A DNA stretch of 64,000 nt from Adineta vaga (lineage: Eukaryota; Animalia; Rotifera), in the NCBI GenBank assembly GCA_021613535.1, contig CP075496.1:11532001-11596000 (forward strand), read 5' to 3'. Every line of letters starts with the position of its first letter. Position 1 is the stretch's first letter. The notes beneath the pieces were generated by a model that saw only the letters and a list, made by a program, of their open reading frames with translations, had not been told where the DNA came from and made no database searches. A program made the translations under genes and the position numbers. Of the stretch, positions 16,892 through 22,170 are shown in pieces.

Positions 16892-17695
16892 TTATTTCTT
16901 TCGTACAAATGTTGTACCATCTCCTAAACGTAATTGACAAACATCTACTGTTTGATCTAGTTTAATTTTATCATTCAATTGACGAATAGTAACTGTATTG
17001 ATATCATTTTTCGTTGGGTCTGCAACGAAACCAGTATAAATTGTATTGTCAATGGCCATTAAACCATTTGGACGTAATAAACGAAGACATAAATCATAAT
17101 AGTTAACATAATTGGGCTAGAAAAAATAAATGACATCATAAATGAGTTTTCATTCAATAGAAATTCATCAAACTGAACAAACCTTATCGCCATCAATGAA
17201 AATAAAATCGAAACTATTTTCTCCATATTTTTCTAATAAATCATTCAATGAATCAATGGCTGGTTTAATACGTAAATCTAATTTCTTGGCAACACCAGCT
17301 TTTTCCCATATATCACGTCGAACATATTTATCATCAATATCTAATGTAACTACAAGTCCATCATCAGGAACAGCTAATGCCATACTCATAGATGTATAAC
17401 CAGAAAGTGTACCAACCTCAATACAACGTTTGTAATGGCCAATTCGAATCAACATTTGAAAGAATTGTGCTGCATCAGCTGAACCGATCATCAGTGCGAA
17501 TTTTTCTAGAATAAGAAAATTCATTCAAGGGAAATAATTTTTCATTGAATGTAGATATAAAATCTTACCTGGTAATGATCTTGTATACTCAATTAATTCA
17601 TTCTGTGCAGTTGTTGGTCGAAAAGTATGATCCATAATATAATGATCAATTGGATCATGGGATAATTGAGCTTTAATATCTATTAAATTTGTCAT
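16892..17695 (-). CDS. Class I SAM-dependent O-methyltransferase (Methyltransf_3; COMTD1/CCoAOMT/MysB family), occupying the MysB position of the mycosporine cluster
   Basis: 3 exons (17695-17569, 17506-17183, 17116-16892, approximate). Motifs IEVGTLSGYT, FDFIFIDGDKPNY, LLRPNGLMAIDNT and LGDGTTFVRKK. Confidence 0.9.
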
Positions 17696-18004
17696 TCTGT
17701 ATATTACTCTTTTTTTCTTATCTAGAAGATTATAAACAAAGAGATTTGAATATGATTTTACTTTCGCTTTTTTATTACTGAAAAGAAAGAAAAAAGTATT
17801 TATCAGATAGAACCACTAAAAGAACACAAAAAGCAATAATAATAACTAAGCATGAATAACGAATTCAATCGTTTTTCTTTTGAACAAAGGAAAGAAAAAT
17901 TCTCATTTCGGAAGTATAAAAAAATGCAAAGAAAAAACATCGAACCTGTCGTATTTAACATGATGTCTTTAGTGTTTATTCCATTGCCATGAGAATATAA
18001 GCAT

Positions 18005-19429
18005 TTACATCACTGCTGAACAATAAGTTTTGTCTGCTGCATTTAAATTCATTCCGATTGAAGAAGCTAATGTTGATGAAACGGCATCAACAAGTAATTC
18101 ACCATTTAATGCTTTTGTTAATACTACATCATCACCATCTGTTGTTTCCATATAATCACTTTGATCAACATATGCATCAACACCATCACCAGCACGTGGA
18201 TAACTTTTAACAAGTTGCTTATGTTCTTTTAAAATTTGTTCAAGTTCTTCATATGTTAAATCATTTACGAATATACAATTGCCAATTGGTTTAGGCATAG
18301 CTGCACGTTGATGACCATCACGTGTTAACATAATTGATTTAGTTGCTTTCCAAATTAATTCAATTGTGAACAATTCATGATCAAGTGTAAGACCAACACG
18401 TGACATTAAACCAAGAATACGATCACGTTCTTCCATTGTTATCAATCCACGTTTCCATGCTATTGTTGTAGAAAATGCCATATCAATGTTAATAGCATGA
18501 CCATGACGAAGTGGAATTGGTGGTGTAAGTTCAAGTGTTGGTGACCATGTATGTCCAAAAGCAATCACACGATCGAGCATAATTTCATGAAGATTTGGTA
18601 CTCTATTCGAGAAGAAAGAAATCAATTAAATTTTGAATAATTTATTGAATAAATATAAATCTTACTCGAGTTCAAGCATTTTCTTAATACCAATATAATT
18701 GATTTGTTTGGCAGCATTTCGAACTTCTTCAGGTGCACCATCTAAGTAACCGAAATGAGTTGAAATCAATTGTTCACCATATTTATCAAGTAGATCAAAA
18801 ACGGTCTTTTCTGCTACTGTTGAAATTTTCACTAGTTCAGCAAAACCATTGCGAATATGTCCTTGTGATAAAGTTTTCAAAAATGAAAAATCAAGAAACG
18901 TCATTAATGGAGCATGGTAAGCACCGAGTCGATTTTTAAGTTTGCCATGATTAAGACCAACTTTAATTGAAACACTTGCATCAATTAAACCAATTAATGT
19001 CGTTGGTATACGAATGAAATTTGATGTACGTCGATACGATGCACATGCATAACCGGCAACATCTGTTAAAACACCACCACCAATGACTAAAACAGGTTCT
19101 TTACGAACAAGACCATATTCAGCAAATGTATCCAAAATTTCCATTTTTGTCTTCATTGTTTTACGTAATTCACCACTTCGAATAACTTTTGTCGTACACT
19201 TGATATTATGTTCAGCAAAATATTTTTCCATTACTTGTCCATATACTTTATGAACATTATCATCAATAATAACTAAACATCGACCCCAGGCATGATAACA
19301 TTCAGCTAAATCAGGATGTTTTGGATCGAAGATATTATCAACAAAACGAAAATCATAGGTAATTCTCTCATAACCTTCAATGTGAAATCCATTTGTTGTT
19401 GGTGTTACGATTGCTGACATATCCGACAT
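18005..19429 (-). CDS. mysA: Demethyl-4-deoxygadusol synthase (sedoheptulose 7-phosphate cyclase, DHQS-like), about 453 aa
   Basis: Exons 19429-18666 and 18602-18005. [51 protein letters not shown]-type MLELEVPNLHE (EEVS enzymes have MLEELxPNL), [16 protein letters not shown] and [13 protein letters not shown]. Confidence 0.95.
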
Positions 19430-20616
19430 GATGTTTGAAGAATATAATAAGATCTTGAAATAGAAAAAAAGATTTAAATTCAAAAGAAACTAAAGCATTA
19501 TATACATACTGAATATAATAGAAAAGAATCGTTGATTAATGTAATTACTTTACTAAAATGCACTGAGTTAGACTTTTTTTTATAGTGATTTACTTTGATG
19601 AAATCGTGATTCTTATATACCATCAGAATAGACTGTTTCTATGGATAAATTTCTCTACTTATTGCCCTTCTTTCGTATGCTATCCAGGGTAATCTCACAA
19701 GAGAGAGACTATGGTGTTATATAATATAAAAAAACAACAGACACTACGATATTCTTACATAGTAATAAAAAAAAATAGTTAAACGAATCATACACGTGAC
19801 AGACAAATATTAAATACTTGAAGAACATTTCTTTCCCTTCTTCTCGCTTCTCATCTGTTTGATTAAAAGAACAAAAATGTAAAGGGTTTATGAGTAAATG
19901 ATATTTTTAGTGTACATATCATCATGTAACATGAAAAGTAATAAAGTCTATTACACCCATATTAAAAGATGCTTTCAGATCAGTTTTTTCAATCAAATAT
20001 TCAAAATTTCATAGTCATCCGTTCTCATATTGATTTTGGTAATTCGTACTATCTCCCCTGTCTTATATAATCGAATATTTGTACGTGTCACGTGACGTCT
20101 GTAGATCAGATAATCAAATAAAACACGCACACATGGTTTCTTTCTTTCTACGGCCGACCACGAAACACACTTAGAAAAATCTATTTAAAAGGTAAAAAAC
20201 ACAAACTGTCTTCGGTTTATTCAGTATGAAATGTGTTTCTCTTCTTTTATTCTTCGTAGTTAAATTAACACGAAAATCTTTGCAAGCTGCGAAAAATTTG
20301 TTAAAATACGTGCTGTGAAAGGAATAACCTGGGCGTTTAAGTAGAAATATATTGCACAATACATTTTATGATGCGTTAGATAATAAGCGAACTGATTGAA
20401 ACCAAGGTCAGTATTTAGAAACTACGCCGTTTCTTTTTTTGAAATGTGTACTGAGAGTACGATTTTGATGCTTATTTTAGAAAAATTATTTTTGGAATGT
20501 CAATTTTCAGAAAAAGAAAACAGAAAAATGTTGAATCAGTCCATGAAGGTACTAATTTCGTATATCTTTATATTCCATAACGAAAACTAATATTGATAAT
20601 TGTTTCGATCATAGAG
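19430..20616. promoter_or_regulatory. Divergent intergenic/promoter region between mysA and mysC with two CACGTG E-boxes and 5' introns
   Basis: CACGTGAC at 19793-19800; palindrome GTCACGTGAC at 20087-20096 overlapping TGACGTC at 20093-20099; head-to-head gene orientation. Confidence 0.5.
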
Positions 20617-22170
20617 ATGCTGAACTTAAATCCAAAAGCTATTGAATCATTTGATGCAGCAAAACATCGACAACGATCTATAGATAGTTTTGAACAAACA
20701 TGGCCTTGGTATCGTCATTTAGTTAAATCAATTTCTCATACAATAAATATACCATCGGATACATTGAATAATTATGTGCGAACAATTGGTTTTCTTCTTT
20801 TACTTGGTTTTCTCTTTCCATTCAATTTATTAATTACAATAATAACATTATTTTCTTCAAAATTGAATCATCTTTTTAAACAAAATGACGCAGAATCAAA
20901 ATTTGAATCTAAATCTACACGTAAACGAATTCTTATTTCAGGTGGAATGATGACCAAAGCACTTGTATTATGTCGTGGATTTCATCAAGCTGGCCATCAG
21001 ATTATTCTTGTTGATGAAGCAACCAATTGGTTGACAGGTCATCGTTGGTCGAAATCTGTTGAACGATTCTATGTTGTTCCATCACCTGAAAAAGATCCCG
21101 AAGCATACATTCAATCACTTGTCGATATTGTTCAAAAAGAGAAAATTGATATGTTCGTACCAGTAACTGGTCCTTATCATGCTCATATCGATGCACAAGT
21201 AATTATATATATATATATATATTATTTGATAAGATTATGAAAATGATTTATTTTATTATAGGTAAAAGCTGTTTTACTTCAATATAATTGTTCGACATTT
21301 CATATGAATAGTGATGAAATTGCTCTTGTTGATAATAAGTATTCATTTACGAATAGAGCTCGTTCATTAGATTTACCTGTTCCAAAATCATTCTATATTA
21401 CATCACGACGTCAATTACTTGATTTTAATTTTGAACAAGAAACTCGTCCATATATTTGTAAAAGTATTATGTATGATTGGCTTGATCGAGGAGCAATGAT
21501 AACATTACCACGACCAACACAAGCCGAAATGATTGAATATGTTAATCGTTTACCTATCAATGAAGAATGTCCATATATTCTACAAGAATTTATTCAAGGT
21601 GATGAATATTGTACACATGGTACATGTTTAAATGGCGAATTAACATTATTTACTTGCTGCCATTCATCATCATGGCAATTAACTTATAAACATATCGATC
21701 ATCCATCAATTGAACAATGGTGTAGAAAATATGTTCGAGAAATGAAATTAACTGGTCATGCATCATTTGATTTTATTGTCAGTTCCGATGATGGTAAAGC
21801 ATATGGAATTGAATGTAATCCACGTGTTCATTCAGCGATTACAGCATTTTATAATCATCCAAATCTTGCTGATGCTTATTTACCATCTCTTCATTCTAGA
21901 ATTATGATTCCGTTATCAACAGCTCGTGAAACGTATTGGTTAACACATGAATTATGGCGAATCATACGACATATTCAATCAATGGATAAAGTTTGGGAAT
22001 CTCTACGACGAATATTTACTGGTAGAGAAGCAATATGGTCATTTGATGATCCATTACCATTTTTATTACATTATCATGTTCATATTGTTTATCTTTTGTT
22101 GGATAATCTTCGACCAAGTCGTATACGATTTTTTCATAAAATTGATTGTTGTCTCGGTGAACTCGCATAA
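20617..22170 (+). CDS. mysC: ATP-grasp C-N ligase, MysC (mycosporine-glycine synthetase) family, about 496 aa
   Basis: Exons 20617-21198 and 21262-22170. Hydrophobic N-segment then ILISGGMMTKAL, GFHQAGH, WLTGHRWSKSVERFYVVPSP, VPKSF, QEFIQGDEYCTH, LTGHASFDFI, IECNPRVHSAITAFY, TYWLTHELWR and DDPLPFL, collinear with cyanobacterial MysC. The exact N-terminus is uncertain. Confidence 0.93.

Follow-up and report, generated by a model that had tools for sequence, protein, structure and literature searches.

We report here that a three-gene cluster of the bdelloid rotifer Adineta vaga is probably a host-integrated, expressed biosynthetic locus for mycosporine-type UV-absorbing/antioxidant compounds. 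The cluster occupies positions 16892-22170 of the window (the whole stretch of 64,000 nucleotides that was analysed, C4:11,532,001-11,596,000 of an A. vaga assembly of 100.8 Mb in 6 contigs), and extends from the stop codon of an O-methyltransferase gene (16892) to that of an ATP-grasp ligase gene (22170). It lies approximately 11.5 Mb into the chromosome-scale contig C4. Its components, in window positions, are as follows:

16892-17695, minus strand: O-methyltransferase, class I cation-dependent, CCoAOMT-like; exons 17695-17569, 17505-17183 and 17116-16892; 224 aa
17722-17723, minus strand: AG acceptor for spliced leader (SL) trans-splicing of the O-methyltransferase mRNA, 26 nt upstream of the ATG
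18005-19429, minus strand: predicted desmethyl-4-deoxygadusol synthase (DDGS, MysA-like); exons 19429-18666 and 18602-18005; 453 aa; 3' untranslated region (UTR) to about 17810
19430-20616, no strand: divergent intergenic region between DDGS and MysC, which holds the non-coding 5' exons of MysC and introns
20617-22170, plus strand: predicted MysC-type ATP-grasp ligase (type 1); exons 20617-21198 and 21262-22170; 496 aa; N-terminal hydrophobic segment

Reading frames and sequence reading revealed no frameshift or internal stop in any of the three genes, and all four coding introns (17117-17182, 17506-17568, 18603-18665 and 21199-21261) are of the GT-AG type and 63-66 nt long. The O-methyltransferase gene begins 310 nt downstream of the DDGS gene on the same strand. 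The G+C content of the cluster (29-31%) matches that of its flanks, and values of 28-33% are found over the entire window. An earlier sequence-only reading of this DNA had described three adjacent, unbroken genes with GT-AG introns of host size, flanked by animal genes in a probable bdelloid rotifer. This description was confirmed in each respect: our gene models match it to the base, the genes lie deep in C4, their introns are removed in RNA (with trans-splicing in the case of the O-methyltransferase), and an NCBI entry of Adineta vaga matches a C5-encoded protein at 100% identity.

The stretch, or part of it, is contained in 15 public runs from seven studies, ten of which cover at least half of the sampled words. 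Spliced contigs were compared for four of these runs (X1, X5, X6 and X12), one per study, from four studies. All four coding introns are missing from the contigs, which skip 17117-17182, 17506-17568 and 18603-18665, and jump from 21193 to 21262. Both O-methyltransferase introns are absent in the X1 and X6 contigs, and one of them in X12; the DDGS intron is absent in X1, X5 and X12, the same runs in which the spliced form of MysC was found. A TA-rich simple repeat (21200-21231) inside the MysC coding intron was masked in this comparison, and it is masking that places the end of the MysC exon at 21193, 5 nt before the true donor (21198/21199). Since intron-free contigs arise only from RNA, all three genes of the cluster are transcribed and correctly spliced.

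The O-methyltransferase mRNA is, in addition, trans-spliced. Its contig in run X6 carries nine extra 5' letters which, together with the genomic AG, match the 11 nt at the 3' end of the SL exon; this exon was derived from the SL RNA genes of the genome itself (a 15-mer that precedes a GT donor and has 45 exact copies, the control having 0). SL trans-splicing has been documented in bdelloids (PMC1925144). The SL RNA genes of A. vaga form arrays (C5:9884358-9925967, C2:8684675-8691977 and other places; loci L115-L120), often as head-to-head pairs about 158 bp apart. The DDGS transcripts end at approximately 17810 and the SL acceptor lies at 17722, and this gap of about 88 nt fits, without proving, the processing of DDGS and the O-methyltransferase from one two-gene, operon-like transcript. 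The 5' UTR of MysC was found to contain up to three short introns (20549-20614, plus 20190-20257 and 20405-20478, the latter two in one run), which were read from GT..AG joints in the X1 and X12 contigs. Removal of intron 20549-20614 leaves an upstream open reading frame of 9 codons (ATG at 20528), whose TGA overlaps the MysC start codon at 20617 and which may control translation of MysC.

For domain searches, alignments and trees, the exons were entered as separate rows and not as joined spliced proteins. The exons of the cyclase gene matched DHQ_synthase (PF01761, 7e-31) and DHQS_C (PF24621, 4e-10), and their best solved relative is the Anabaena DDGS 5TPR (1.5e-86 and 9.8e-66 for the two exons). 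The match to the EEVS ValA is far poorer (4e-48 and 4e-22), as are those to DHQS entries (1e-27 or weaker), and a cyclase of the EEVS/gadusol type was therefore rejected. The stretch at the exon junction agrees, by eye, with the motif by which fungal DDGS are recognised (PMC10057719). On the strength of its sequence, the cyclase is a member of the DDGS family. The gene is present in a single copy; no second DDGS was found in the A. vaga genome.

The ATP-grasp ligase can likewise be assigned to the MysC family. Its exons matched the NCBIfam ATP-grasp model PRK06849 at 6e-70 and 2e-32; searched singly, they score 112 and 236 bits, the cut-off of 406 being set for the whole protein. The ligase shows full-length homology, with 43-48% identity, to MysC proteins of Chroococcidiopsis and Nostoc from mysABC(D) clusters. 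Of 112 positions that hardly vary among 30 bacterial MysC, it retains 95, the ECNPRxH catalytic core among them.

The third gene did not conform to expectation. The exons of the O-methyltransferase matched Pfam Methyltransf_3 (PF01596) at 2e-28 and 9e-12, and its closest solved relatives are CCoAOMT-like enzymes, with human COMTD1 (2AVD) at 9e-18. It is 84-96% identical to the DDGS-linked O-methyltransferases of A. ricciae and A. steineri, and 30-33% identical to bacterial MysB. Trees were built by quick IQ-TREE runs with support from the Shimodaira-Hasegawa-like approximate likelihood ratio test, and approximately unbiased (AU) tests were made on subsets of 32-36 rows; for the O-methyltransferase, both were run on rows from single exons, 107 and 74 residues long. 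The bacterial MysB clade (support 100) leaves out the rotifer enzyme, which joins bdelloid CCoAOMT-like paralogues at 96, one from Rotaria among them, with sequences of Seison and a tick nearby at weaker support. A clade uniting it with MysB was rejected (p = 0.006). The sequence-only reading had taken this gene for MysB, an identification that has to be abandoned: the enzyme is a member of a bdelloid CCoAOMT-like family and not a MysB orthologue.

The A. vaga genome contains further genes of these families outside the window, namely three more MysC paralogues in addition to the cluster copy on C4 (four in total, on C4, C1, C3 and C5) and a gene for a second predicted ligase, MysD:

C1:2836170-2837689 (locus L002): MysC in two exons, within the duplicated block C1:2835035-2845016
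C3:13724118-13725434 (locus L003:1048-2364): solitary intronless MysC, 438 aa, tail-to-tail with a LicD-family gene
C5:4320865-4323931 (loci L004 and L027): head-to-head pair of MysC (453 aa, minus strand) and MysD (346 aa, plus strand)
C5:4322891-4323931, plus strand: MysD of this pair, intact and intronless, 346 aa, found by a scan of the genome with the Dala_Dala_lig_C model
C3:13622045-13623665 (loci L005 and L123): decayed MysD followed by decayed MysC on the same strand, with frameshifts and large deletions
C3:13762254-13763351 (locus L025:1444-2541): classical D-Ala-D-Ala ligase, 365 aa, divergent from an alanine-racemase-like open reading frame (ORF) recognised by eye

About 0.7 kb separates MysD from the C5 MysC, and the two genes are transcribed in opposite directions. 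Compared with proteins of Nostocales, MysD shows 64-69% identity, and the closest named cyanobacterial 90%-identity cluster includes a protein of Cylindrospermum stagnale PCC 7417. In Nostoc sp. S4 a MysD-like protein is encoded by the fourth gene of a mysA-B-C-D cluster. The identity to Nostocales, taken with this fourth-gene position, identifies the Dala_Dala_lig_C gene on C5 as MysD, a predicted second ligase encoded outside the window. The decayed pair on C3 looks like what remains of a MysD-MysC order such as that of A. steineri. The ligase at 13.76 Mb on C3 was considered as MysD and rejected, as it stands beside the alanine-racemase-like ORF and is 32% identical to the C5 MysD; the two look like a bacterial-type cell-wall gene pair outside the MAA (mycosporine-like amino acid) pathway. 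Such pairs reportedly occur in bdelloids.

The C1 MysC is 54% identical to the cluster copy, and the intronless C3 and C5 copies are 52% and 49% identical to it. The C1 block is collinear with the window in inverted orientation and shares with it the genes of window 8.0-12.5 kb, MysC and an EGF gene; it lacks 8 kb carrying a mitochondrial carrier, an MFS-type gene, the O-methyltransferase and DDGS. The C1 MysC keeps 75 of the 112 conserved positions, and its core motif is degenerate (ECHPYVN). No relics of DDGS or O-methyltransferase genes were detected, at E <= 1e-3, on the C1 block or beside the C3 and C5 MysC genes. The LicD-family neighbour of the C3 MysC (L003:2484-3212; Pfam 3e-16) may be of foreign origin.

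The claim that the genes are kept clustered held good in two other Adineta species. A. ricciae shares the A. vaga layout, with MysC divergent from the DDGS-O-methyltransferase pair, between the same flanks, and also the same head-to-head MysC and MysD pair (locus L032); a 530-kb metagenome contig repeats the three-gene layout. The arrangement in A. steineri is different. In one assembly of this species MysD, a type-2 MysC, DDGS and the O-methyltransferase are co-directional within 7.4 kb, and in the other an eIF2B-like gene lies upstream of DDGS-O-methyltransferase and a different type-2 MysC downstream; the DDGS-O-methyltransferase segment is 93.5% identical between the two assemblies (loci L017 and L030/L031). 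NCBI annotates the A. steineri DDGS and O-methyltransferase as one protein of 676 aa, which is probably a merged gene model. The Adineta database entries for these proteins are named "unnamed protein product" or "hypothetical protein". The integrity of the three cluster genes, their chromosomal context, their transcription, their cis- and trans-splicing and their conservation in Adineta are matters of observation, as is the assignment of DDGS, MysC and MysD to their families.

As regards the surroundings of the cluster, the metazoan character of the flanks, also claimed from the sequence, stood in part. The EGF-domain gene was confirmed by a domain search; the labels SLC46 and SLC16 could not be upheld, as Pfam searches with single exons of these two genes gave no match and the transporter neighbours are demonstrable only as MFS-type. 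Farther away lie a gene with a Rab-binding PH domain (a RabGAP-TBC gene occupies the matching place in A. ricciae) and a mitochondrial-carrier-like ORF pair recognised by eye, with a Mito_carr annotation at the corresponding position in A. ricciae. Elsewhere in the genome there are at least seven more CCoAOMT-like copies (C4:6341717, C1:13307034-13459744, C1:14913503 and C5:10317342-10318722; loci L008-L014), some of them in tandem and one with an internal stop; the closest copies lack the intron between exons 2 and 3 of the cluster gene.

What the enzymes catalyse at each step, which substrates they use and what the locus does for the animal are all inferred. In the first step, DDGS would cyclise sedoheptulose 7-phosphate to desmethyl-4-deoxygadusol, which the downstream, possibly co-transcribed O-methyltransferase would then methylate to 4-deoxygadusol. 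The divergently encoded MysC would condense an amino acid onto C3, giving a mono-substituted mycosporine absorbing at about 310 nm, and MysD from C5 could add a second amino acid, giving an imino-MAA absorbing at about 330 nm. Glycine as the amino acid used by MysC, and mycosporine-glycine as the end product, are a guess. In Phaffia, DDGS, an O-methyltransferase and an ATP-grasp enzyme suffice for the production of a mycosporine (PMC10057719).

Several observations weigh against this proposal. The cluster MysC departs from the bacterial consensus at 17 of the 112 conserved positions, albeit with an intact core, and a search by sequence found no solved relative of it, so that the substrate of MysC cannot be read from its sequence; we know of no specificity code for MysC. 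The AU tests reject both a clade of the rotifer O-methyltransferase with MysB and its exclusive sisterhood with the DDGS-linked O-methyltransferase of the amoebozoan Planoprotostelium fungivorum (p = 0.012), and we infer its action on desmethyl-4-deoxygadusol from linkage alone. Named rotifer matches for DDGS, MysC and MysD came only from Adineta, with no Rotaria or Didymodactylos among the matches, which faintly suggests that the pathway may be confined to the Adinetidae or lost elsewhere; Rotaria is present among the matches to O-methyltransferase paralogues. Finally, contig depth supports neither a ranking of expression nor a reading of induction.

It might be asked whether the locus makes an MAA at all. 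Its product could be 4-deoxygadusol or another cyclitol that serves as an antioxidant or signal; the MysC paralogues might ligate something else or be partly redundant, or the O-methyltransferase might act on another substrate and the pathway end at the DDGS product, desmethyl-4-deoxygadusol. Such an explanation would accommodate the 17 substitutions in MysC and the departure of the O-methyltransferase from the MysB type. It also finds a precedent in the nearest eukaryotic DDGS genes, those of P. fungivorum and of the early-diverging fungus Basidiobolus ranarum, which in both organisms adjoin an O-methyltransferase gene, as in the rotifer, but have no ATP-grasp gene beside them. However, MysC adjoins DDGS in A. 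vaga, in A. ricciae and on the metagenome contig, another MysC adjoins it together with MysD in A. steineri, and the cluster MysC has kept its catalytic core. Moreover, to our knowledge MysD has no role outside MAA synthesis. We consider this explanation, including its variants, to be unlikely.

The ancestry of the genes raises a separate question. In the DDGS tree, a split supported at 100 divides prokaryotic MysA from a eukaryotic group. The rotifer sequences (100) fall in the latter, where they group with fungal genes that carry a DDGS or EEVS annotation and form a polytomy with Basidiobolus, Planoprotostelium and Dikarya. By exon, the rotifer DDGS is 66-73% identical to the Basidiobolus and Planoprotostelium proteins, the highest values outside rotifers. 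The MysC sequences form two types, each supported at 100: type 1 (intron-bearing, C4 and C1) and type 2 (intronless, C3, C5 and A. steineri). The two types are united at 87-100, and their common branch stands outside every bacterial MysC in the sample and far removed from the single Dikarya ligase included; the AU test permits either a single or a separate origin of the two types (p = 0.23). The 18 rotifer MysD rows (100) are nested within cyanobacterial MysD; their sister group, supported at 96, has Aphanothece and Scytonema among its members. The trees thus indicate that MysD and the O-methyltransferase, at the least, differ from each other in ancestry, as DDGS and MysC probably do too. The plain cyanobacterial, actinobacterial or fungal trio envisaged from the sequence does not agree with these placements, which differ between the genes.

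Had the three genes been transferred en bloc by one donor, be it a fungus or amoebozoan or else a cyanobacterium, the mixed ancestry would have to be an artefact of the trees. The pairing of DDGS with an O-methyltransferase in Planoprotostelium, Basidiobolus and bacteria speaks for such a transfer, and the AU tests leave it some room: a rotifer DDGS sister to the bacterial clade was not rejected (p = 0.24), and a shared ancestor for the entire bdelloid O-methyltransferase family and the Planoprotostelium enzyme was only marginally disfavoured (p = 0.044). The individual genes nevertheless point in different directions. The DDGS is 67% identical to the Basidiobolus and Planoprotostelium proteins, as against at most 58% (exon 1) to the best of 581 bacterial matches; the rotifer MysC is 27-31% identical to the Dikarya ATP-grasp ligase, as against 44-48% to bacterial MysC; the MysB clade excludes the rotifer O-methyltransferase, their forced union being rejected; and MysD alone nests inside cyanobacteria. 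A single block is therefore improbable.

A contaminant or chimeric assembly can be dismissed for practical purposes, with a probability close to nil, given the position of the stretch 11.5 Mb into a chromosome-scale contig, a base composition equal to that of its flanks, host-sized introns removed in RNA, an O-methyltransferase mRNA with the bdelloid spliced leader, the collinear duplicate block on C1, synteny in two other Adineta species and the presence of the stretch in runs of seven studies; nothing was found that speaks for it.

Beyond the reading of the locus as a probable mycosporine locus, we tentatively propose, as a possibility rather than an expectation, that Adineta assembled a four-step MAA pathway from genes of differing ancestry, repeatedly clustered by selection, and that the animal itself makes disubstituted MAAs. 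The parts would be a DDGS of fungal/amoebozoan type, a bdelloid CCoAOMT/COMTD1-like O-methyltransferase replacing MysB, a deep-branching MysC expanded to four paralogues, and a later-acquired cyanobacterial MysD. Repeated clustering would have produced the O-methyltransferase-DDGS pair with divergent type-1 MysC in A. vaga and A. ricciae, and the MysD-MysC2-DDGS-O-methyltransferase series in A. steineri.

The closest known counterparts of this system are the cyanobacterial mysA-mysB-mysC(-mysD) clusters (Anabaena variabilis Ava_3858-3855, Nostoc, Cylindrospermum stagnale PCC 7417), which comprise the same four enzyme families. The likeness extends to the sequences (55-58% identity for the rotifer DDGS, 44-48% for MysC and 64-69% for MysD), to the N-terminal hydrophobic segment and catalytic core of MysC, and to the adjacency of DDGS and the O-methyltransferase. 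In contrast to the cyanobacterial clusters, the rotifer genes have spliceosomal introns, SL trans-splicing, a divergent DDGS/MysC arrangement, a non-MysB O-methyltransferase and four MysC paralogues, and are distributed over two A. vaga chromosomes; of these genes, only MysD nests inside cyanobacteria.

The fungal DDGS-OMT-ATPG cluster (Phaffia rhodozyma, Dikarya), which makes mycosporine-glutaminol (PMC10057719), is likewise a eukaryotic three-gene cluster with introns, in which DDGS is opposite in direction to a partner gene. In the tree the rotifer DDGS falls with the eukaryotic sequences, and its identity to Dikarya DDGS is 58-62%; the rotifer ATP-grasp ligase, compared with a single Dikarya sequence, reaches only 27-31%. 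Fungi are reported to have no second ligase (PMC10057719), whereas Adineta has the predicted MysD. The Planoprotostelium and Basidiobolus pairs share with the rotifer the adjacency of the O-methyltransferase and DDGS; they differ in that no ATP-grasp gene was seen beside them and, for Planoprotostelium, in an O-methyltransferase that is not the exclusive sister of the rotifer one.

MAAs in animals are usually ascribed to diet or symbionts, the known exceptions being cnidarians and the gadusol pathway of vertebrates. The cnidarian mycosporine genes (Nematostella, Acropora) are animal-encoded and thought to be foreign in origin. In vertebrates, EEVS and a bifunctional MT-Ox make gadusol and not MAAs (PMC4426668). 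The rotifer locus resembles both in that sunscreen cyclitols derived from sedoheptulose 7-phosphate would be encoded by the animal, by genes thought to be foreign, but its cyclase matches DDGS far better than EEVS. A review of zooplankton derives their MAAs, those of rotifers included, from diet or symbionts (PMC7073964). The sequence-only reading knew of no description of such genes in rotifers, and rightly so: no published link of bdelloids or rotifers to mycosporine biosynthesis genes was found in the full-text literature, a survey of the distribution of C7-cyclitol synthases lying outside that coverage. What is new would therefore be the standard MAA pathway in a further animal phylum, with a predicted O-methyltransferase that is not orthologous to MysB, a MysC family that has expanded and a clustering that differs from species to species.

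To conclude, our analysis indicates that A. vaga may itself produce UV-screening compounds, which animals as a rule obtain with their food. The presence of DDGS, O-methyltransferase, MysC and MysD genes in a culturable bdelloid makes the idea of an own sunscreen or antioxidant in a desiccation- and radiation-tolerant animal directly testable, and the four MysC paralogues could form a natural set of ligases of differing specificities. The locus also represents a rare animal case of a metabolic cluster whose parts appear to be of different ancestry and are differently arranged in sister species, and it bears on the domestication of foreign genes and on cluster formation in eukaryotes. If the assembly from genes of mixed ancestry is true, a metabolic gene cluster would have formed within an animal.

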